DNA of 64,000 nt, taken from IMG/VR virus record IMGVR_UViG_3300024358_000009, positions 1 through 64,000 of that record. One strand, given 5' to 3'. Within the stretch, counting starts at the first letter, position 1, and the number at the start of each line of letters is the position of its first letter. A program made the translations under genes and the position numbers. Below, in pieces: positions 46,919 to 57,175 of the stretch. A model generated the notes under the pieces. That model made no database searches and had not been told where the DNA came from. It was given only the letters and a program-made list of their open reading frames with translations.

Positions 46919-47300
46919 CAAGGCAATACAAGAACAAGACTTTATATATGTTGAACAAGCGTTATCAACATTAATCGGAACTAATGTTTCGGAAAAACCG
47001 GTAAAGAAAAAAACAGTAAAGAAAACTAAAGTTGAGTCGAATAAGAGTTCTGGAAGTGATTTTGTTAATAAATTTGTGGATGATTTAAGCATTCATCCAG
47101 AATTAATAAGCAAAACACCAAAGAAGATTAAAAAGCAGCACAGACCTGAATTTGTTCCAAATACTGTAGATGCTAGTTGCAGTAAATGTGGAGCAAAAGA
47201 AATTGTAGATAAAGATGAAATTAATTCTTTATCAAGGTTGGCCGAAGGTCAATACGCATTTACATGTGCTAAATGTCTTAAAAGGAATATATCAAGATGA
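46896..47300 (+). CDS. hypothetical protein with Zn ribbon
   Basis: CSKC and CAKC. Confidence 0.6.
   Translation: MTIIDLLNKAIQEQDFIYVEQALSTLIGTNVSEKPVKKKTVKKTKVESNKSSGSDFVNKFVDDLSIHPELISKTPKKIKKQHRPEFVPNTVDASCSKCGAKEIVDKDEINSLSRLAEGQYAFTCAKCLKRNISR
47017..47045 (+). promoter_or_regulatory. intragenic copy of promoter motif TAAA-N17-CGAATAAG
   Basis: Exact spacing; about 250 bp upstream of helicase. Confidence 0.45.
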
Positions 47301-48778
47301 TGCATGATCCAGCAGCTGAAAGGGCGGTTTTATCTTCTTATTTTCAACATGGCAAAGATGCCTATATTGAATCTTGCGATATCATTGACGATGAATGTTT
47401 TTTAATAGACTCTAATAAAATAGTTTTTAAATGCTTAAAACATTATTATCAAGATGAAAATAGCAAAATAGATATTCCAACTTTTTTATCTATAGCCAAT
47501 TCACTTGGTTATAAAGATTTTTTTGAATCTAAAGACGAAAAAAAGTATTTAAACAGTCTTACTATACTTCCTGTAGAATTAAAAAATACAAGAAAATTAG
47601 CTTCTAAATTAGCTAAGCTAAAAATAGCTAATAATCTTAAAAAAGAAATAGATATTGCAAGTACAGAATTACAAACTGTTACTGGCGATGAAACGCTTTC
47701 TTCAATACTTGGAATAGCAGAACAAAGAATATTTGAGTTTACGCTAAATCTTTCAAACTCTGAAGATTCTACGCCAAAAGTTATTGGCGATGGATTAGAT
47801 GAATATGTTGAACACTTAGAAAATAACCCAATTACACAAATAGGTATACCAAGTGGTTTTCCTATATACGATCAATGTATTGGAGGTGGGTTCAGGCCAG
47901 GAAGCGTAAATGTTATAGGTGCTAGAATGAAGACAGGAAAATCATTCTTTGGAGATGCAGTTGCCTTAAATGTTGCAGATAAAAATATTCCTGTTTTAGT
48001 TTTAGATACAGAAATGTCAAATAAAGATCATTGGCATAGAATGCTGGCTTGCCTCTCTGGAGTTAAAATAAATGATATTGAAAGTGGTAAATATTCTCAA
48101 ATAGCAGAATCTAAAAACAGAATTCATCAAGCAAAAGAAAAGCTAAAGTCTATTCCTTATTTTTACAAATCAATAGCTGGACAACCTTTTGAAGAAACAT
48201 CTTCTATTATGAGAAGGTGGATAATGCAAAAAGTTGGTTTAGATGAAAATGGATTAGCAAAACCATGTTTAGTTATTTTTGATTACATTAAACTAATGAG
48301 CGATGATTCTATATCTAAAAACATAGCTGAATATCAAGCTTTAGGATTTTTGATGACTTCTTTGCATAACTTCTGTGTAAAATATGGAGTTCCATGTTTA
48401 GCTTTTACTCAATTAAATCGTGATGGTATAAACAGAGAAGATACCGATGTAGCTTCTGGATCAGACAGAATATTATGGTTATGTAGTAATTTTTCTATAT
48501 ATAAAAGAAAATCTGAGGAAGAATTAGCCGAAGAAGAAGCTGCTGTTAATGGCAAAAGGTATAATTTAAAACTCATACCAATTGTCAGTAGGCATGGCAG
48601 TGGATTATCGCAAGGCGATTATATTAATGTTTTGGCTGAGTATGAATTTGGCAGAATTAAAGAAGGCCCAACAAGAAACAACTTCCATTCTTTGAGAAAT
48701 ACAAATACTGGATTTACTGTTTCTGAAGAGGTATTAAGAAATGAACCAATTGACTTTTTTGGATCAGACGAAGATTAA
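47297..48778 (+). CDS. dnaB: DnaB-family replicative helicase
   Basis: AERAVL, GARMKTGKS, DTEMS, IFDYI, QLNR, SGSDRI. Confidence 0.92.
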   Translation: MMHDPAAERAVLSSYFQHGKDAYIESCDIIDDECFLIDSNKIVFKCLKHYYQDENSKIDIPTFLSIANSLGYKDFFESKDEKKYLNSLTILPVELKNTRKLASKLAKLKIANNLKKEIDIASTELQTVTGDETLSSILGIAEQRIFEFTLNLSNSEDSTPKVIGDGLDEYVEHLENNPITQIGIPSGFPIYDQCIGGGFRPGSVNVIGARMKTGKSFFGDAVALNVADKNIPVLVLDTEMSNKDHWHRMLACLSGVKINDIESGKYSQIAESKNRIHQAKEKLKSIPYFYKSIAGQPFEETSSIMRRWIMQKVGLDENGLAKPCLVIFDYIKLMSDDSISKNIAEYQALGFLMTSLHNFCVKYGVPCLAFTQLNRDGINREDTDVASGSDRILWLCSNFSIYKRKSEEELAEEEAAVNGKRYNLKLIPIVSRHGSGLSQGDYINVLAEYEFGRIKEGPTRNNFHSLRNTNTGFTVSEEVLRNEPIDFFGSDED

Positions 48779-49853
48779 CTTCATATCTGAAAAGATTTTT
48801 GAAAATATTCAAGTCTTTTTAGAAATGTTTGATGTTAAATATAAGAATATTAATAATTATATTTCTGGTCCATGTCCAATACATGGCGGAGATAATCCTA
48901 CTGCATTTTGTATGTATTTAGATGGAAACACATTAAAAGGTAATTGGTGTTGTTACACACATCATTGCGAAGAAGTTTTTAAACCAACTCCATTTGGTTT
49001 TATTCGTGGTGTTTTATCTAACAGAGAAAATAATTGGACTGGCCAAGCAAAAGATATCAAATACAGTTTTGGTAAAACATATGATTTTTGCCAATCTATT
49101 TTAAAAATAAATGAATCAGATATTCCAGAGCTTAGCGATATTGAAAAAAAGAAGTTTTGTAATGACATGAAAATTTTTGAAAAGAAAAAGAAGCATTTTA
49201 AAGGCTGGAATCTTCATAATGTAATTTCAAGTATGATAATTCCATCTCCATATTTTTTAAGTCGTGGATATAAACAAGAAACATTGGAACATTTTTCAGT
49301 AGGTGTTCCTAAGAATAATGATGGCATATTTAAAGATAGATCAATTGTTCCTGTAATAGATAGAGATGGAATACATGTTGTCGGTTTTACCGGCAGATCA
49401 AACTACGAGAAATGCGATAAATGCAATCAATATCATCAGGCTTCATGCAATTCTAAAAATCCTAAATATATATATTCAAAATGGGCAAATAACAGTGGTT
49501 TTGCAAAAGAAAGGTATTTATACAACTTACATAATGCTTTGAACGCAGCTAAGTTCAATAAAACGCTTATTATATGCGAAGGGCCAGGAGATGTTTGGTC
49601 TTTGCACGAAAAAGGTATAGAAAATGCGGTTGCTATCTTTGGTATATCTTTAACGGATTCTCAACAAATTATCCTAGAAACATGTGATATAACAAAGATT
49701 ATCTTGTTGTTAGATAATGATGAAGCTGGTATAAATGCTAAACAAAAGATTAAGTCTTTGCTCAGTAGATTTTTTAATGTTACTATTCCTATTTATGAAG
49801 GCAAAGACCCTGGATCTACCACATCAGATTTAAGGAATATTTGTAATGTGTAA
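48741..49853 (+). CDS. DnaG-type DNA primase
   Basis: CPIHGGDNP...WCC.THHC Zn finger; TOPRIM CEGPGD, LDNDEAG, KDPG. Confidence 0.88.
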   Translation: MNQLTFLDQTKINFISEKIFENIQVFLEMFDVKYKNINNYISGPCPIHGGDNPTAFCMYLDGNTLKGNWCCYTHHCEEVFKPTPFGFIRGVLSNRENNWTGQAKDIKYSFGKTYDFCQSILKINESDIPELSDIEKKKFCNDMKIFEKKKKHFKGWNLHNVISSMIIPSPYFLSRGYKQETLEHFSVGVPKNNDGIFKDRSIVPVIDRDGIHVVGFTGRSNYEKCDKCNQYHQASCNSKNPKYIYSKWANNSGFAKERYLYNLHNALNAAKFNKTLIICEGPGDVWSLHEKGIENAVAIFGISLTDSQQIILETCDITKIILLLDNDEAGINAKQKIKSLLSRFFNVTIPIYEGKDPGSTTSDLRNICNV

Positions 49854-50508
49854 AATACTTGGAATAAGTGGCAAAAAAGGTGCTGGAAAAGATACTTTAG
49901 CTAATTCTTTTTATAATCATTGTAAATTTGTTTTGGGCAAAAAAGTTGAAATTATTCCTTTTGCTTCTGCTTTAAAAGAAACATGTTGTAATTTATTTAG
50001 CATAAAAAAACAAAATATCTATGGATCAGAAGAGGATAAAAACAAAAAAACTGCATATAAATGGTCTGATATGCCGGGATTTATTGCTAAAGATATGTAT
50101 TTTAAGCTAGAAAAAAGTGGAATTTATCCAGAAGAATTAAATCTCTTTACAAGAGAAGATTCCGAAATGTCAGCTAGAGAATTTTTGCAATTTTTTGGAA
50201 CAGAAGTTTGCAGAAAAATTAAAGATCAAGTTCATATACAATCTGTATTTAATAAAATAAATTCATCTAAGAAAGATTTTTTTATTATACCAGATGTTAG
50301 ATTTGAAAACGAAGTTAAATCTATTCAACAAAACGGTGGCATAGTAGTTAGATTAAAAAGAGAAATATCAGAAGATAACCATTCTTCAGAAAAAGTCTTA
50401 GATACATTCAATGAATTTGATTTAGTTATAGACAATTCAAAGTTGAGTGTAGAAAAAGAACTTGCATTGCTTAATAAATTTTTAAGCAAAAAAGGTTGGT
50501 TTAAATGA
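49846..50508 (+). CDS. deoxynucleoside monophosphate kinase
   Basis: GISGKKGAGKD, REFLQFFGTEVCR, IPDVRFENE. Confidence 0.88.
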   Translation: MCKILGISGKKGAGKDTLANSFYNHCKFVLGKKVEIIPFASALKETCCNLFSIKKQNIYGSEEDKNKKTAYKWSDMPGFIAKDMYFKLEKSGIYPEELNLFTREDSEMSAREFLQFFGTEVCRKIKDQVHIQSVFNKINSSKKDFFIIPDVRFENEVKSIQQNGGIVVRLKREISEDNHSSEKVLDTFNEFDLVIDNSKLSVEKELALLNKFLSKKGWFK

Positions 50509-51521
50509 TAATAACTTATCTTAGGTCTTCTTCAGCTGGCTCATTTGAATGGTGTCAGCATAAATACTTTTTGACTTATTGTCTTGGATTTAAAGATGAT
50601 TCAAACAAAAAAGCTGTTAAGGGTAATATAGTTCATAAAGCTTTAGAACTATTAGCCAATAAACAACTTTGTTTGCAAACTAAAACTAAAACTTTTTCTG
50701 ATGATGAATTAAGTTTAGAGTTTGACACTTTGCAAATATGTCCAGAAAAAGCAATTAAATCAGCTTTTGAATTTTACAGTTTAAAAGAATCTTCTTTTGA
50801 ATGGACCGAAAAAGATTATAAGGAATGCGATAAATGGATGTGGGATACTTTATTATTTAATGACGGAATGTTTTCCCCTCTTAAAAGAAATATAGTTGAG
50901 CCAGAAAAGTATTTTGATATAGAGGTTGATAAACCTTGGGCTAAATATGATTTTCGTTTAATGAATGGAGAAACCGTAACTGGTAATTTAAGATTAAAAG
51001 GTACGATGGATTTAATAACTAGAATAGATTCAAAAACAATAGAATATATAGATTGGAAAACCGGAGAGAGAAAAAACTGGTCAACAGGAAAAGAAAAAGG
51101 ATACGAAGATCTTTTTGACGATTTTCAACTTCGTTTATATCACTATGCATTAAGTAAAGTTTATCCAAACGAAGAAACTATTATAGTTACAATCTTTTTT
51201 GTTAAGGCTGGAGGCCCATTCACTATATGTTTTCATAAAGAAGATTTAGAGCAAACCGAAGAAATGATTAGAAAAAAGTTTGAATCTATAAAAAGATGTA
51301 AAACCCCAGTTAGAATATTAGATATGGGTAGGGATAAATGGAAATGCGATAGATTATGTAAATTTTACAAAGACGATTTTGATAATACTGGAATATCAAC
51401 TTGTCGAAAAATACACGAAGAAATCATTGAGTTAGGTCTTGAAAAAGTATATGCTAAGTATGCTGATTTTTCTGCTGTAAAACAATATGGTAGTGGTGGT
51501 GGTAAAACTAATAGGGAGTAA
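50505..51521 (+). CDS. PD-(D/E)xK Cas4/RecB-like exonuclease
   Basis: SS...FEWC, GNIVHKALE, LKGTMDLI, IDWKTG, QLRLY, C..C. Confidence 0.85.
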   Translation: MIITYLRSSSAGSFEWCQHKYFLTYCLGFKDDSNKKAVKGNIVHKALELLANKQLCLQTKTKTFSDDELSLEFDTLQICPEKAIKSAFEFYSLKESSFEWTEKDYKECDKWMWDTLLFNDGMFSPLKRNIVEPEKYFDIEVDKPWAKYDFRLMNGETVTGNLRLKGTMDLITRIDSKTIEYIDWKTGERKNWSTGKEKGYEDLFDDFQLRLYHYALSKVYPNEETIIVTIFFVKAGGPFTICFHKEDLEQTEEMIRKKFESIKRCKTPVRILDMGRDKWKCDRLCKFYKDDFDNTGISTCRKIHEEIIELGLEKVYAKYADFSAVKQYGSGGGKTNRE

Positions 51522-51523
51522 TC

Positions 51524-52273
51524 ATGAGCGAAGAAAAAATTAACAGCCTTGATAAATTATTAAGTCTTTTTTCAAAACAAGATGTAGAGATTGCATCTGA
51601 AAAAGAAACAGAAAAAAATGAAGTAGTCGTAAACGATAAGTCAATAGATAACACTCCTAGTCCAGAAATATTAGTTTTTAAAACATCTTTACTTGATTCG
51701 TTGGGTAAATTTCAAGGATTATTAAAGGGCGAAGATTGTGAACTTTATGTAAATGAAATTTTACAACCAGAAAATTTTGAATGGATTCCAAGAAATTTAG
51801 CAGAAAAAGACCCATCGTATAAACAAATCATTCCATATTGCGTAATTGTTTGTGCAAATAAAACATTTACATATTCACGCAATAAAAACGGAAATGAAAA
51901 TAGATTACATGGAAAGAAGTCTTTAGGTGTTGGCGGTCACATTGAAAAAGAAGATTCTATAAATTCAGAAAATTTTTATGAAAATGCTGTTAAAAGAGAA
52001 CTAAAAGAAGAAATTTCTTTAGATTTAGGGGCAATTAAATCGAATAAGATTATAGGCATCATTAATGATGACAGTAACGATGTAGGAAAAGTTCATTTTG
52101 GTATTGTTCACAAAATAACTGTTTCTACAACCCACTGCATAGAACAGATTGAAAATAAGTTAAGTGAAGCCGGATGGGAGTTTACTGGCTTTTTAAATAA
52201 AGGAATTGATCAATGGGAAAATTGGTCATTCTTTGTAATCTCTGAACTTTTAAGCGAATTAAAGAAAAAGTAA
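51524..52273 (+). CDS. NUDIX-family phosphoesterase
   Basis: AEKDPSYKQIIPY, RLHGKKSLGVGGHI, RELKEE, IND.....GKVHFG. Confidence 0.85.
   Translation: MSEEKINSLDKLLSLFSKQDVEIASEKETEKNEVVVNDKSIDNTPSPEILVFKTSLLDSLGKFQGLLKGEDCELYVNEILQPENFEWIPRNLAEKDPSYKQIIPYCVIVCANKTFTYSRNKNGNENRLHGKKSLGVGGHIEKEDSINSENFYENAVKRELKEEISLDLGAIKSNKIIGIINDDSNDVGKVHFGIVHKITVSTTHCIEQIENKLSEAGWEFTGFLNKGIDQWENWSFFVISELLSELKKK
52020..52048 (+). promoter_or_regulatory. intragenic near-copy of promoter motif (TAGA-N17-CGAATAAG)
   Basis: CGAATAAGATTATA shared with the 3555 and 6163 copies; upstream of dnaE-N. Confidence 0.35.
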
Positions 52274-52309: not shown

Positions 52310-54223
52310 ATGTCAAAGTGGATTCCTTTGCATGTACATTCACAATATTCTTTGCTCGATGGATTATCTTCTGCTGAAAAAATAGCAGATAGATTATCTG
52401 AACTAGAATTAAAGGCTTGTGCTTTAACAGATCATGGCACATTATCTGGTTTGATTTCTTTTTATAAGAAATTAAAATCTAAATCTATTAGTCCGATTCT
52501 TGGTTGCGAATTTTATATTTGCGAACAAGACCCAACTATTAAGAATGACGAGAATAAAAAACTCAGTCACTTATGTGTTCTTGCAAAGAAAGATGCTGGA
52601 TGGTCAAGTTTAGTCAAAGCGAGTTCGGTATCTAACTCTGTTGATAACTTTTATAGAAAACCAAGACTTGATCTAAAAACATTGTCATCAATTGCAAATG
52701 GCAATTTTATAGTTTTTTCTGGGCATCCAGGGTCTGATCTTGGAAACTGTCTATTCACAGATTTAAATGAAGCTTATAGGGCAGAGACATACGAAATAGC
52801 GAAGTCTTTAGTTCATAAAGATTGGGAAAAAAGAGCAACTGATCTTGCATATAAATATGCAGATTTATTTGGTAAAGAAAATTTTTTCTTAGAAATACAA
52901 CTTATAGATTCTGAAAATATTCCGGCAACAAAGATTATATCTAAAGCATTAAGGCATATTGCTAAAAAGCATGGTTTTAAAACTGTAGCAACTCCAGATG
53001 CTCATTATGCAAGAAAAGAAGATGCTATAGACCAAAGAGTATTATTAGCCTGTTCTATGAAGAAAACTTTAACGGAAATTAGAAACCATATAAACAACGA
53101 TGAAGACTTTGGTTTTTCTGGATTTTTTAAATCAAACAATTATCATATTCCGTCTGTAGAAGAAATTTCTGCTTTAAATCAACCAGAAGAGTTAGAAGCC
53201 ACTTTAGAAATATTTGAGAAGTGCAAAGATTACAATCTATTGCGTAATCCGATGCTTCCAAAAATTGCTGGAGAAACATCTTCTTCTGCTGAAATTAAGA
53301 GGCTTTGTAGAGAAGGTTGGAAAAAAAGATTCTCTTTCAAAAAAGAAGATTCAAGATTTAATCAATATGGTGATCGTGTTACCAAAGAGCTAGAAGTTAT
53401 AACAGGTGCTGGGTTAGAAGATTATTTTTTAATTGTTTATGATTATTGTAATTGGGCAAAACAACAAGGCTGGTTAGTTGGAAAAGGTCGTGGTTCCGGT
53501 GCTGGATGTATGGTTAGTTATTTATTAGGAATAACAGAAATTAATCCAATTGAAAACGGATTGCTTTTTGAAAGATTTTATAACTCAGGTAGAAATGCAC
53601 CAGGTCGTATATCATTGCCAGATATTGATTGTGATTTTCCAATATCGAAAAGAGAAGAAATTATAACTTATATCAAAAACAAATATGGTTCTGATAAAGT
53701 TTCTCAGATATCTGTATTTACTAGAATGCAGGGTCGTGGTGCTTTAAAAGATGTGTTAAGAATACACGCAGCTTGTTCTTTTGAAGAAAGTAATTTAATT
53801 ACTAAACACATTCCAGATGAAGCTGAAATATCAGAAGAATTACAAGAAATGCGTGATGAAGGACAAGAACCATCAATTATTAAGTGGGCTTTAGAAAATT
53901 GCCAAAAAGAACTTGAACCTTATTGCAAATTAAAAGATGATGGCAAACTTGAAGGCGAATATGCAAAGTTTTTTGCTCAAGCCATAAGAATGGAAGGCAC
54001 AAAAAGATCTCAAAGCAAACATGCTGCTGGAATAGTCATAGCTTCTCAGAATTTACAAGATATATGTCCTATGATTTATGATAAAACATCTCATGAAAGC
54101 ATAGCTGGTCTTGAAATGTCAGACTTAGAATCTATTGGACTTGTTAAGTTTGATATACTTGGAGTAGCTGTTTTGGACAAACTTATGGGAGTTCAAAAGC
54201 TTCTTGCTGGAGAAGATTTATGA
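52310..54223 (+). CDS. dnaE: DNA polymerase III alpha, N-terminal part (PHP + catalytic core)
   Basis: LHVHSQYSLLDG, LTDHG, GRGSGAG, LPDIDCDF, SKHAAGIVI, KFDILG then stop. Confidence 0.92.
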   Translation: MSKWIPLHVHSQYSLLDGLSSAEKIADRLSELELKACALTDHGTLSGLISFYKKLKSKSISPILGCEFYICEQDPTIKNDENKKLSHLCVLAKKDAGWSSLVKASSVSNSVDNFYRKPRLDLKTLSSIANGNFIVFSGHPGSDLGNCLFTDLNEAYRAETYEIAKSLVHKDWEKRATDLAYKYADLFGKENFFLEIQLIDSENIPATKIISKALRHIAKKHGFKTVATPDAHYARKEDAIDQRVLLACSMKKTLTEIRNHINNDEDFGFSGFFKSNNYHIPSVEEISALNQPEELEATLEIFEKCKDYNLLRNPMLPKIAGETSSSAEIKRLCREGWKKRFSFKKEDSRFNQYGDRVTKELEVITGAGLEDYFLIVYDYCNWAKQQGWLVGKGRGSGAGCMVSYLLGITEINPIENGLLFERFYNSGRNAPGRISLPDIDCDFPISKREEIITYIKNKYGSDKVSQISVFTRMQGRGALKDVLRIHAACSFEESNLITKHIPDEAEISEELQEMRDEGQEPSIIKWALENCQKELEPYCKLKDDGKLEGEYAKFFAQAIRMEGTKRSQSKHAAGIVIASQNLQDICPMIYDKTSHESIAGLEMSDLESIGLVKFDILGVAVLDKLMGVQKLLAGEDL

Positions 54224-54468
54224 AAAAGAAAGAAGACTTATTGGAAGAAATCAAAGCACTGGAAGAAATGCTTGAGTCAAAAGATGTAATAATAAAAGAA
54301 TCAATTAATATTATGAAAGCTTTGGTTTTCAAATTTGGCGGTAAAGTTCTGTTAAAACCTGAGTTTATTCAAGCAGCAAAAAGTAAGGATAATTATGTAG
54401 ATATAAAATATGACGAATCTGGGCGTTTGAAACTTGAAGTTAAAGAAGTAGATGAATTAAGAAAGTAG
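54220..54468 (+). CDS. hypothetical protein between dnaE halves
   Basis: ATGA coupling, GGAG RBS. Confidence 0.65.
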   Translation: MKKKEDLLEEIKALEEMLESKDVIIKESINIMKALVFKFGGKVLLKPEFIQAAKSKDNYVDIKYDESGRLKLEVKEVDELRK

Positions 54469-54475
54469 GAACATT

Positions 54476-55141
54476 GTGAATAATTCGACTATATTAGTTT
54501 TTGATTTTGAAACTGGTAGTGTCAATCCAGAAACTTGTGAAGTTATTCAAGTAGCTGCTATGGCACTGCATCCAAGAAGTCTTGCTGAGTTAGGGCAATA
54601 CACAAGTCTAATTAAGCCAAGAGACTTTTCTAAGCTTGAAAAAGAAGCTTTAGAAATTAATAAAAAGAGCATAGAAGAACTTGAAAAAGCACCAGATTTA
54701 TCTATTGTTTGGAAATCTTTTACATCTTTTATTAAAAAATATAACCCAAAACCTGGCAATACATTTTTTGCACCTATTGCTGCCGGAAAAAACATAAGAC
54801 ACTTTGACATGATTATCATTAATCGTTTAGCTAGAGAATTTGGCGATTGTGATAAATATGGAAAACAAAACTTATTTAATAAAAGAAGCGTTTTTGATTT
54901 GGATGATTTTGTTTTTTATTGGTTTGATAATTCAAATGAGTTGCGTGATCACAAGATGGACACTCTTAGAGAGTATTTTGGTATGTCTACTGAGAATGCA
55001 CATGATGCTTTAGTAGATGTTAAGCAAACAGCAACGCTATTGAAAAACTTTATACAGCTTCATAGAAAAGTAGCTGCCAAAGTTAATTTTAAAAACTCAT
55101 TAAGTGATAACATAGAAAGAACTAAGGGTTTCTCTGCTTAA
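54476..55141 (+). CDS. DEDDh 3'-5' exonuclease (DnaQ/epsilon-like)
   Basis: FDFETG (ExoI), NIRHFD (ExoII), HDALVD (ExoIII); GTG start after AGGA. Confidence 0.88.
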   Translation: MNNSTILVFDFETGSVNPETCEVIQVAAMALHPRSLAELGQYTSLIKPRDFSKLEKEALEINKKSIEELEKAPDLSIVWKSFTSFIKKYNPKPGNTFFAPIAAGKNIRHFDMIIINRLAREFGDCDKYGKQNLFNKRSVFDLDDFVFYWFDNSNELRDHKMDTLREYFGMSTENAHDALVDVKQTATLLKNFIQLHRKVAAKVNFKNSLSDNIERTKGFSA

Positions 55142-55150
55142 AGGATATTT

Positions 55151-56776
55151 ATGGAAGATTTTTATAAATTTGATTGTGGCTGTAAATGGCCAATACTTAA
55201 AAATTCTGAAAACGGCAAGATGCCAAAATTAAAAATAGATTTACAAAATCTACCAGATTGTGATTTAGCTTGGAAAATTTTTGCTAATGGTGACACAAAA
55301 GGCATTTTTCAATTAGAATCCCATCTTGGTAAACAATGGTCTAAAAAACTAAGACCCAAAAATATGGAGCATCTTTCTGCTCTTGGAGCACTTTTAAGGC
55401 CAGGTTGCCTTCGAGCATTAGACGAAGAAGGCGTTTCAATGACGGAGCATTATTGCAAAAGAGTAAATGGTTTTGAAAAAGTTCCAAGTTATCATGCGTC
55501 AGTAGATAATATCTTAAAACCTACATATGGTGCTTTAGTTTTTCAAGAACAGGCAATGCAAATTGCACAAGCTGTTGCAGGATTTAATCTGCAAGAGGCT
55601 GATGTTTTAAGAAAAGCAATTGGCAAGAAGAATACTCAAGAAATGGCCAATTGCAAAAAAATGTTTATTGATGGTGCTAAAAAAGCAGCTGTTATCTCTG
55701 ATGAACAAGCAGAGGAATTATTCGGTTGGATTCAAGCAAGCCAAAGATATTCGTTCAACAAAAGTCACAGTTCAGCGTACGGATATACAGGATATGACAC
55801 GGCTTATTTAAAAAGTCATTTTCCAGTATATTTCTTTACGAGTTGGCTTTATTACGCAAAAGACAAAGCTGATAGTTCACAAGAAGTTGCAGATCTTATA
55901 GACAATGCAAAACTTTATAACATAAATGTATATCCACCAGACATTAGGATGTTAAAGTCTAATTTTTATACTGACGGTGAATCTATATGGTTTGGCCTAT
56001 CTGATATTAAAGGTATAGGTACATCACAAATCAATAAACTTATTAACTGCTTTAACTCTCAGTCAGAAAAGATTGATAGTTGGATAAAATTTTTAATAAA
56101 TTGTTCTGATTCTATTTCTTCTACATCAGTATCTAAAATAATAGCAGTAGGCGGTTTTGATTGGACTGGTGAATACAGGCAAAAGTTAATAGCAGAATTA
56201 GAAACATGGAATCAATTAACTCAAAAAGAAAAAGAATGGATTAGAGAAAATTGCAAAGATTATAAAAATATAAAAGACTGTATACTTCTTCTTGCTAAAC
56301 CGAAAAAAGAAGGTGGTGGTTGCAGTAATAAAAATCGTGTTTCATTAGTTAACGATTTGTATAATATGTTAGAAAATCCACCAACTACTTATAATGATCC
56401 AGTCACTTGGAAAGTATGGGCAGAAAGAGAAAGTTTAGGCATAGCTCTGTCCTGTTCATTAACCGATGGTTCAGATAATCAATCTGCAAATACAACATGT
56501 AAGGAATTTTATTTTGGAAAAACTGGATTTATGGTATTGTCAGTTGAAATATTAGATGTTAAAGAAATAATTACTAAAAAAGGAAAAGATCCCGGTAGAA
56601 AAATGGCTAGATTAACAGTTTCTGATTCTAGCTGTAAAATAGATAATGCGATTATCTTTCCAGATGCTTATGAGCTATTTGTAGACAAAATTTTTGTAGG
56701 AAACACTGTTTTAATTCGTGTCGAGCGTGACAGAAAAACAGATGCTATGGTTCTCAAAGATATTAACCAACTGTAA
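55151..56776 (+). CDS. dnaE: DNA polymerase III alpha, C-terminal part (fingers, HhH, OB)
   Basis: GDTKGIFQLES, LLRPG, FQEQAM, LRKAIGKK, YSFNKSHS, PPDI, FGLSDIKGIG, OB fold MA..T..D. Confidence 0.92.
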   Translation: MEDFYKFDCGCKWPILKNSENGKMPKLKIDLQNLPDCDLAWKIFANGDTKGIFQLESHLGKQWSKKLRPKNMEHLSALGALLRPGCLRALDEEGVSMTEHYCKRVNGFEKVPSYHASVDNILKPTYGALVFQEQAMQIAQAVAGFNLQEADVLRKAIGKKNTQEMANCKKMFIDGAKKAAVISDEQAEELFGWIQASQRYSFNKSHSSAYGYTGYDTAYLKSHFPVYFFTSWLYYAKDKADSSQEVADLIDNAKLYNINVYPPDIRMLKSNFYTDGESIWFGLSDIKGIGTSQINKLINCFNSQSEKIDSWIKFLINCSDSISSTSVSKIIAVGGFDWTGEYRQKLIAELETWNQLTQKEKEWIRENCKDYKNIKDCILLLAKPKKEGGGCSNKNRVSLVNDLYNMLENPPTTYNDPVTWKVWAERESLGIALSCSLTDGSDNQSANTTCKEFYFGKTGFMVLSVEILDVKEIITKKGKDPGRKMARLTVSDSSCKIDNAIIFPDAYELFVDKIFVGNTVLIRVERDRKTDAMVLKDINQL

Positions 56777-56788
56777 GGAGTTTTTTAA

Positions 56789-57175
56789 ATGAATGAGTGT
56801 ATCTTTTTGGGTAATTTCGTTCGTGATCCAAGGCTTGTACAAACAAGTAATGGAGAAACGGTAGTTAATTTTACATTAGCTGTTAATCCTCCTTATAAGC
56901 GTGAAAAGGGAGATAAAAAGGGAACTGCATATATTGATTGTGAAGCATGGGAAAAAACAGCCGAATTAATTAATAAAAATTTTTCTAAAGGTTCAAGAAT
57001 TTTAGTACAGACATTTGCTAAGAGTGATTCTTGGAAAGATGAAACAACTGGAGCTAAAAGGAATAGAATTAAGTTTGTAGTAACAAGATTCCATTGGCCA
57101 GCACCAACAAGTCGTCAAGAACGAGAAGAAAAAGAAGAAGATGTTTTAGCAGAAACTAATTGGTATCCTGTTTAA
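56789..57175 (+). CDS. ssb: single-stranded DNA-binding protein
   Basis: LGNFVRDP, V.NFTLAVN, IDCEAWEKTAE...FSKG..ILV. Confidence 0.88.
   Translation: MNECIFLGNFVRDPRLVQTSNGETVVNFTLAVNPPYKREKGDKKGTAYIDCEAWEKTAELINKNFSKGSRILVQTFAKSDSWKDETTGAKRNRIKFVVTRFHWPAPTSRQEREEKEEDVLAETNWYPV

Follow-up and report, generated by a model that had tools for sequence, protein, structure and literature searches.

Textbooks present DnaE, the catalytic subunit of bacterial replicases, as a single chain. In the alpha-epsilon-theta core of Escherichia coli DNA polymerase III (Pol III), alpha is a single chain, dnaQ is unlinked, epsilon is a separate proofreader and theta is small, while the PolC of Gram-positive bacteria is one chain whose PHP domain carries an inserted DEDDh exonuclease. 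This work describes a different arrangement in the first 64,000 nucleotides (nt) of IMG/VR record IMGVR_UViG_3300024358_000009 (hereafter the window, the first 64 kb of a 206-kb contig, 31.7% G+C), where dnaE is divided between two genes at positions 52310-56776, referred to as the N-half and the C-half. As with the Pol III core and PolC, a C-family polymerase appears to work with a DEDDh proofreader; unlike either, the alpha chain is divided, and the exonuclease gene sits between the palm and fingers genes. The sequence comparisons below suggest that the two halves very likely constitute a non-covalent two-chain DnaE polymerase that does not depend on an intein.

The best-known split of this enzyme is that of the cyanobacterial dnaE-n and dnaE-c genes, the products of which are rejoined by the naturally split DnaE intein (PMC2677866). 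Both cases involve the same enzyme family encoded by two genes, with both needed for one catalytic subunit. However, the cyanobacterial halves carry intein parts, undergo ligation, are encoded at distant loci and are cut inside the fingers, next to FNKSH, whereas the phage break has no intein, falls at the palm/fingers junction, and lies within one operon with an exonuclease gene between the halves. Fractured genes, including three DnaE loci, similarly combine a split intein with a free-standing gene for a GIY-YIG or Vsr-like endonuclease (Dassa et al. 2009, PMC2677866). These share with the phage locus the order of part, small intervening gene or genes, and part, as well as an origin in phage-like aquatic metagenome DNA, and an interruption at K204|S205 in a second copy of the C-half, described below, is identical in kind. 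Yet the break under study contains neither intein halves nor a homing endonuclease, and its constant occupant is a DEDDh exonuclease.

Intein-free splits of phage polymerases are already known. The B-family polymerase gp43 is split in some T4-like Aeromonas phages (Petrov and Karam, as cited in PMC2677866), and the split B-family polymerase of PhiKZ, DNAP-N and DNAP-C, forms a stable 1:1 complex by cryo-EM (PMC13648687). These also place a replicative polymerase on two genes without an intein, with a non-covalent complex shown or inferred, but they belong to family B rather than C, have other cut points, and keep the exonuclease domain within the N-terminal piece, so that none lies in the break. 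Within family C, T4-like jumbo phages encode a minimal Pol III alpha split between two stand-alone proteins, again without an intein (Iyer et al. 2021, PMC7824862). Although this is likewise a C-family catalytic module on two proteins, it is stripped-down, lacking PHP and other domains, is encoded by distant genes and accompanies a B-family replicase, whereas the phage under study has a full-length DnaE, with PHP, HhH and OB, that is cut once. A DnaE break in the same loop is also present in Rossellomorea phage phiT1, although no paper discussing that split was found in the literature. Nor was any description found there of a full-length DnaE cut at the palm/fingers boundary without an intein, with a proofreader gene in the break, and fixed throughout a large clade.

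Together, the two halves hold the features of a DnaE-type polymerase, namely PHP, a palm with three catalytic aspartates, and fingers, HhH and OB, but not on a single polypeptide. The N-half comprises PHP, palm and thumb, with the Pfam domains covered full length (PHP E 1.5e-34; palm PF07733 E 1e-73) before the stop codon. All three catalytic aspartates are in this half (D438 and D440 in PDIDCD, and D615 in KFDILG), and are invariant in 20 diverse relatives. Its PHP region aligns with the Thermus PHP domain and all nine metal-ligand positions are conserved, with H8, H10, H42, E67, H139, D230 and H232 being invariant, and D17 and H87 nearly so. The C-half comprises fingers, HhH and an OB fold (PF17657 E 8.6e-41; PF14579 E 4.4e-9), the strands of the last lying at residues 461-540 in the predicted model. 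Each of the fingers motifs tested (FQLES, LRKAxGKK and FNKSH) is present, and the residues of the dNTP-binding motifs, R154/K155/G158/K160 and F202/H206/Y210, are invariant in the alignment. No C-terminal tau-binding domain was seen in the C-half.

Structure alignment matches the N-half to residues 6-629 of Thermus DnaE and 240-563 of E. coli alpha, and the C-half to residues 641-1110 and 577-901, respectively. The cut is in the loop after the helix following the third catalytic aspartate, at the palm/fingers boundary, equivalent to approximately residues 564-576 of E. coli alpha and 630-640 of Thermus DnaE. The final helix of the N-half spans residues 620-637 or thereabouts, and the protein ends 19 residues past KFDILG, rather than the 16 given in the original prediction, a model's reading of the same DNA. 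The C-half, which that prediction had restarting shortly before TxGIFQLES, does start ahead of TKGIFQLES, albeit by 48 residues, making the wording generous. The resulting junction exceeds those of E. coli and of unsplit relatives by about 20 residues, but is of canonical length in a subclade with short-type C-halves, which lack the N-terminal extension of about 26 amino acids (aa) found here. Modelled alone, the C-half folds well (predicted local distance difference test, pLDDT, 88.6), with residues 1-17 making up a beta-hairpin whose turn holds a CGC motif (residues 9-11). This F-x-C-G-C-x-[FW]-P hairpin and a third cysteine, C37, are conserved in long-type C-halves (residues 1-37; 55151-55260 in the window), and the CGC motif and C37 are absent from short-type C-halves and unsplit relatives. 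The cysteines are a possible metal site, although no fourth ligand was identified.

The break in dnaE is neither an artefact nor a pseudogene. Unitigs from a DNA run match the break region with 0 differences, and independent assemblies and runs all show the identical break. A second copy of the locus in the same contig (copy B), about 80% identical, has the same four genes and the same break. Between the copies, at a synonymous divergence (dS) of about 1, the ratio of nonsynonymous to synonymous divergence (dN/dS) stands at 0.08 in the N-half, 0.06 in the exonuclease and 0.05-0.08 in the C-half, with both halves under strong purifying selection; the 82-aa open reading frame (ORF) within the break, ORF82, has a value of 0.32, evolving four to five times faster. 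Conservation of the breakpoint in relatives, which the original prediction had proposed as a check, was then assessed on a larger scale. The 120 best matches from a word-index search, clustered at 90%, are all proteins of 629-692 aa with PHP and palm only, and come from many aquatic data sets. An exhaustive HMMER search with the N-half returned 25,247 matches at E<=0.001. Among the 150 top-ranking representatives at 50% clustering, 139 stop no more than a few residues from the point where the window's N-half stops, and only six run on into the fingers. About 70 IMG/VR loci with sufficient sequence downstream share the gene order N-half, exonuclease, C-half and single-stranded DNA-binding protein (SSB), at 50-58% identity. 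In a very large clade of aquatic phages, the split is both old and fixed.

Some relatives show further rearrangements. In protein P0192, the N-half does not stop at the break point but is joined there to a YpsA/SLOG domain (PF12694) in circularly permuted form. On the contig of locus L064, the C-half (G001:C1:12519-14106) is about 10 kb from the N-half, and is itself spread over two neighbouring reading frames (residues 20-341 and 342-539), reflecting either a further split or a frameshift between HhH and OB.

A split intein has an N-intein of about 90-105 aa that begins with Cys1 and contains blocks A and B, and a C-intein of about 35-50 aa that ends in HN and is followed by Cys, Ser or Thr. 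Neither half of DnaE matches the Hint or intein Pfam families at E<=0.01, and the signature of HN followed by Cys, Ser or Thr at the +1 position is not present at the junction. The approximately 20 extra residues at the junction are also too few for a split intein, given the 96 and 38 aa of a real one. An intron, in turn, has no room, as the spacers between the exonuclease and its neighbours are 7 nt (from ORF82) and 9 nt (to the C-half), and the rest of the gap is coding. No Rfam intron family matched, the best Rfam match of any kind being an irrelevant microRNA model at E 0.25. There is no homing endonuclease gene in the break, where ORF82 has no family and the other gene encodes the DEDDh exonuclease. 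The original claims that the break lacks both intein ends and non-coding space for an intron therefore survive. RNA-library contigs from two runs cover 54068-55431 and 54069-55506, and run through all three gene junctions colinearly with the DNA and without joints, agreeing with the absence of a spliced form, though they are weak evidence on transcription or splicing. Read-through of the N-half stop codon was rejected, as the frame meets TAA about 20 codons past the TGA, and recoding is not indicated, as all three stop codons terminate neighbouring genes.

A genuine split intein does occur within the same gene of the same phage population. In copy B, the C-half breaks off after K204, where a 96-aa N-intein that begins with Cys is followed by a 309-aa DUF559/Vsr-like ORF and a 38-aa C-intein ending in Asn, with Ser at +1 (L001:6207-9157), whereas the strain in the window has an empty site at 55762/55763. 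This amounts to a presence/absence polymorphism of a mobile element between strains. As it lies only 600 bp downstream and was easily recognised, the same method would have detected a split intein at the break. The N-halves of many relatives also carry full inteins, some with LAGLIDADG domains (P0123, P0126, P0129, P0131, P0157 and others), with hot spots at about residue 65 (in PHP, before CEFY) and about residue 395 (at GRGSGAG).

A complex of N-half residues 1-637 and C-half residues 1-355, folded with alignments made for this work, gave an interaction score (ipSAE) of 0.85, whereas the highest-scoring of three controls reached 0.00; the mark applied to this score is reached by 58 of 80 solved complexes, and two of 110 mismatched pairs. 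At least 91% of contacts recur between runs, and partner pLDDT is at least 85. In the confidently modelled interface, C-half residues 16-32, 132-154 and 203-238 meet two N-half elements, residues 389-428 and the terminal helix (620-637). The structure prediction that had been suggested as a check thus passed its controls for the two halves. The model is compatible with the cut preserving the canonical fold, which is short of proof of binding. Two-chain assembly is nevertheless strongly supported by comparison, given the conservation of the break, the selection on both halves, the invariant motifs and the lack of spliced RNA contigs.

From this we infer that the replicative C-family polymerase of a tailed phage is made as separate polypeptides that would assemble without covalent joining. 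One chain, alpha-N, would bring PHP, palm and thumb with all three catalytic aspartates, and the other, alpha-C, would bring the fingers with the dNTP-binding motifs, HhH and OB, with the DnaQ/PolC-type DEDDh exonuclease most likely bound as a proofreading subunit. Helix 620-637 of alpha-N, together with the GRGSGAG/FERFYN segment of the palm (389-428), would pack on the finger helices of alpha-C at 132-154 and 203-238, and this modelled packing of palm on fingers implies an active site built from both chains. The overlapping or nearly abutting stop and start codons in an operon free of terminators would permit the components to be synthesised in a coupled manner. A more elaborate version is conceivable but doubtful: an obligately multi-chain replicase with alpha-N, alpha-C and the exonuclease as a stoichiometric core, in which the CGC hairpin and C37 form a metal-dependent clasp that stands in for the missing peptide bond, and which arose through tandem duplication of an exonuclease-dnaE unit and complementary truncation.

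Several points weigh against this two-chain, proofread replicase. The complex may score highly because the predictor reproduces known single-chain structures of DnaE. Late structural genes are present in the RNA libraries at comparable depth, such that carry-over of DNA is possible, and their contigs are compatible with a rare spliced form. Profile searches of the whole contig found neither a beta-clamp (PF00712) nor a clamp loader (PF13177), although the phage has its own DnaE, helicase, primase and SSB. Finally, a PHP domain with all its metal ligands could itself proofread, making the role of the exonuclease less certain.

In its motifs and solved relatives, the exonuclease resembles known proofreaders. 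Its DEDDh motifs, D10/E12 (Exo I), D111 (Exo II) and H176/D181 (Exo III), are invariant in 27 relatives, and its best solved match is a PolC-type exonuclease domain, with DnaQ also matching. It is found in every locus with enough sequence, making it the only constant occupant of the break among relatives, and it abuts or overlaps the start of the C-half in most of them, although in seven loci (L037, L045, L073, L081, L083, L064 and another like them) the two are 0.7-9 kb apart. Its conserved C-terminal tail, K-[VI]-x-F-x-x-x-[FL], makes a role as a subunit plausible. Hence the exonuclease is probably a bound proofreading subunit, judging by its sequence and distribution.

The same cannot be said of the remaining contents of the break. 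Homologues of ORF82 are restricted to the nearest subclades, and the small ORF at its position in most relatives (57-97 aa), which usually overlaps the N-half stop codon, belongs to at least three unrelated families, with two loci having none. The ORF82 model consists of a long helix, a short helix and a beta-hairpin (pLDDT 80), and no function emerged from searches of Pfam, a language-model-based protein atlas, or the PDB with Foldseek, the best result being a weak AbrB-like resemblance with a template modelling (TM) score of 0.34. The break has also admitted a family-4 uracil-DNA glycosylase (UDG) in three lineages, a glutamate dehydrogenase, and a 6-kb cargo block comprising genes for an aldehyde dehydrogenase and a class-III aminotransferase together with a saccharopine-dehydrogenase-like gene. 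An 8.8-kb sugar-modification cluster occupies it in one contig, where the halves are about 10 kb apart. This cargo is located at L053:6284-6835, L078:10148-10729, L082:2500-3072, L063:8652-9860, L033:10578-16119 and L064:11555-17660. The break therefore looks like an ordinary intergenic slot that has picked up differing small ORFs and cargo, with the halves behaving as autonomous genes. The suggestion that the intervening proteins are subunits is thus plausible for the exonuclease, which is constant and has a conserved tail, and unlikely for ORF82, which is neither conserved nor slowly evolving.

Alternative explanations of the break itself can be judged against these data. Recent gene disruption, or an assembly or sequencing artefact, would leave the polymerase a pseudogene and the phage relying on the host replicase, an interpretation to which the chimera-like concatenation of two strains in the contig, and the failure to find a phage clamp or clamp loader in it, lend some colour. 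However, an assembly artefact, the outcome that the original prediction had recognised as fatal to its proposal, is excluded by the unitigs without differences, by copy B, and by conservation, and the sharing of the break between independent assemblies and across hundreds of diverged lineages, the invariant catalytic residues and the dN/dS values refute the pseudogene too, leaving this explanation with a practically negligible probability. That the halves are instead rejoined after synthesis, as in cyanobacterial DnaE, by a degenerate or unrecognised split intein, or by RNA trans- or cis-splicing, gains from the wealth of inteins in this phage lineage, both in the C-half of copy B and near residues 65 and 395 of relatives' N-halves, and from the split inteins of fractured DnaE genes in metagenomes (PMC2677866). 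Yet a 19-residue tail on the N-half, and a junction of canonical length in short-type relatives, leave no room for the roughly 90 and 35 residues of an intein, whose Hint domain and HN-plus-nucleophile signature are missing where the split intein of copy B was readily detected. Equally, the fully coding gap with its 7-9 nt spacers, the lack of an Rfam intron and the colinear RNA-library contigs leave little for RNA splicing to act upon. Rejoining is therefore largely refuted, and very improbable.

Other alternatives accept the two-chain polymerase and concern its partners. All genes in the break, including the exonuclease, may be merely operon neighbours, with PHP proofreading and the exonuclease serving repair or recombination. 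The gap's acceptance of UDG, dehydrogenases and sugar-modification genes, the poor conservation of the small ORF, the presence of an orthologous exonuclease two genes upstream of dnaE, rather than inside it, in an unsplit relative (37% identity), and the nine conserved PHP ligand positions all fit this idea, which is unlikely but deserves to be taken seriously. It explains less well why the exonuclease is present in every sufficiently complete locus, mostly abutting or overlapping the C-half start, why it is as constrained as the polymerase, why its short tail is conserved in the manner of a docking peptide, and why its best solved relatives are PolC-type and DnaQ proofreaders. Conversely, ORF82 might be a dedicated small subunit, either a theta-like protein that accompanies the exonuclease or a clasp that holds the halves together, as would suit a 57-97 aa ORF recurring at the same position, usually across the N-half stop codon, and the evidence of some constraint (dN/dS 0.32) and a confident fold. 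This is improbable: a role as a core subunit is made unlikely by the unrelated families sharing the slot, the absence of any such ORF from some relatives and its faster evolution, as well as by the lack of a fold or family match and the presence of another unrelated ORF, of 49 aa, in the same slot of phiT1. The preferred interpretation remains a two-chain DnaE, with the exonuclease as its probable proofreader and ORF82 as an unlikely subunit.

At the level of genes, four tightly packed reading frames on the + strand fill the region (Table 1). ORF calling and Pfam confirm the earlier assignment of the gap between the dnaE halves to an 82-aa ORF and a DEDDh exonuclease, and the C-half indeed has its own AAGGA ribosome-binding site, five bases ahead of its ATG. 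The overlap of the N-half stop with the ORF82 start is a layout that would allow translational coupling, and no terminator-like sites were found on the + strand between 47000 and 60000. Upstream, the N-half is adjoined by a 249-aa ORF (51524-52273) with no Pfam match, which has 63% aa identity between strains and a dN/dS of 0.31; other genes stand in its place in unsplit relatives.

Table 1. Coordinates of the split dnaE locus and adjoining replication genes in the window.
Feature	Position	Strand	Remarks
Replication block: DnaB-like helicase, DnaG-type primase, dNMP kinase, PD-(D/E)XK nuclease, 249-aa ORF	47297..52273	+	upstream of N-half
dnaE N-half, 637 aa	52310..54223	+	Pfam PHP (PF02811) and DNA_pol3_alpha (PF07733)
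ATGA, N-half stop overlapping ORF82 start	54220..54223	+	read from sequence; N-half stop is TGA at 54221-54223
ORF82, 82 aa, unknown function	54220..54468	+	without Pfam match
DEDDh 3'-5' exonuclease, 221 aa, GTG start	54476..55141	+	RNase_T PF00929, E 3e-16
AAGGA ribosome-binding site, 5 nt before C-half ATG	55141..55145	+	read from sequence
dnaE C-half, 541 aa	55151..56776	+	DNA_pol3_finger PF17657 (from profile position 18), HHH_6 PF14579, OB-like end
C-half codons K204 and S205, empty insertion site (55762/55763)	55760..55765	+	split intein and endonuclease gene here in sister copy
SSB, conserved downstream neighbour of C-half	56789..57175	+	family match and synteny

Some phages that share this gene order encode an unsplit relative, 1,102-1,151 aa in length, and one of them has its exonuclease orthologue (37% identical, with the same tail) two genes upstream of an intact dnaE. 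In a FastTree phylogeny of the N-half region, rooted on the phages Finn, GBK1 and phiT1, six unsplit relatives are nested deep among split ones. The re-fusion of dnaE that this nesting suggests is not claimed, as a tree that unites all split forms in one clade is not rejected by the approximately unbiased (AU) test in IQ-TREE (p 0.49, difference in log likelihood 1.9). A single ancient split is thus compatible with the AU test. Its origin may have been a tandem duplication of an exonuclease-dnaE unit, followed by complementary truncations that would leave the N-half, exonuclease and C-half in order, with the enzyme functional at every step. The ancestral state would resemble the unsplit relatives with the exonuclease just upstream of dnaE, and no insertion into an essential gene would be needed.

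The case of phiT1 (PV767480.1, L094:2986-6268) indicates that such a cut is not confined to this lineage. Its DnaE is encoded by two coding sequences of 573 and 469 aa (within gp20/gp19/gp18), is cut in the same loop, 22 residues after KFDLLG, and lacks an intein, with a 49-aa ORF overlapping the N-half stop codon. However, it is only about 31% identical to the enzyme described here, has no exonuclease in the break, and its nearest relatives, Finn and GBK1, are unsplit. The phiT1 split is probably an independent event, pointing to a permissive loop hit more than once. Bacillus phage vB_BceM_WH1 (L093:3926-8124) also has its DnaE as three coding sequences, the first break being at the PDxD active-site motif, with non-coding gaps of about 700 and 400 nt that are probably introns. 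Given these other break sites and non-coding gaps, WH1 was rejected as an example of the same phenomenon.

The source of the window is an uncultured tailed phage, present in sequencing runs that are riverine metagenomes. Its contig encodes a large terminase, portal, collagen-like tail fibres, ribonucleotide reductase and UvsX-like recombinase, alongside the helicase, primase, kinase, nuclease and SSB of Table 1, and DnaE is the only polymerase found. GenBank phages, searched by tblastn with both DnaE halves and the terminase, reach at most 33% identity for DnaE, and 25% for the terminase, among the records open to that search. Positions 149,318-206,326 of the contig are the second copy of positions 1-58,947, at about 80% identity, and IMG/VR contig 3300024509_000007 carries the same two copies. 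These are probably two co-occurring strains concatenated by the assembler, with a true genome of about 149 kb. Outside the window, the structural half of the contig has giant ORFs on the - strand at 79663-91593 (3,976 aa), 99586-107529 (2,647 aa) and 113553-120305 (2,250 aa), the last with internally repeated DNA at about 117.0-118.8 kb.

While the best-known natural splits of DnaE are repaired by protein splicing, in this large and diverse group of aquatic phages a full-length DnaE has apparently been cut without repair, and the cut has become fixed. This architecture is easily overlooked, as pipelines label both halves 'DNA polymerase III subunit alpha'. The occurrence, in one gene of one phage population, of both an intein-free break and a break made by an intein with its endonuclease is useful for understanding how essential genes become fractured. 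The permissive loop has probably been hit independently in phiT1, a cultured phage, making the idea testable at the bench. Two chains can apparently combine to build the active site of a C-family polymerase, which may provide a natural design for split or regulated polymerases.

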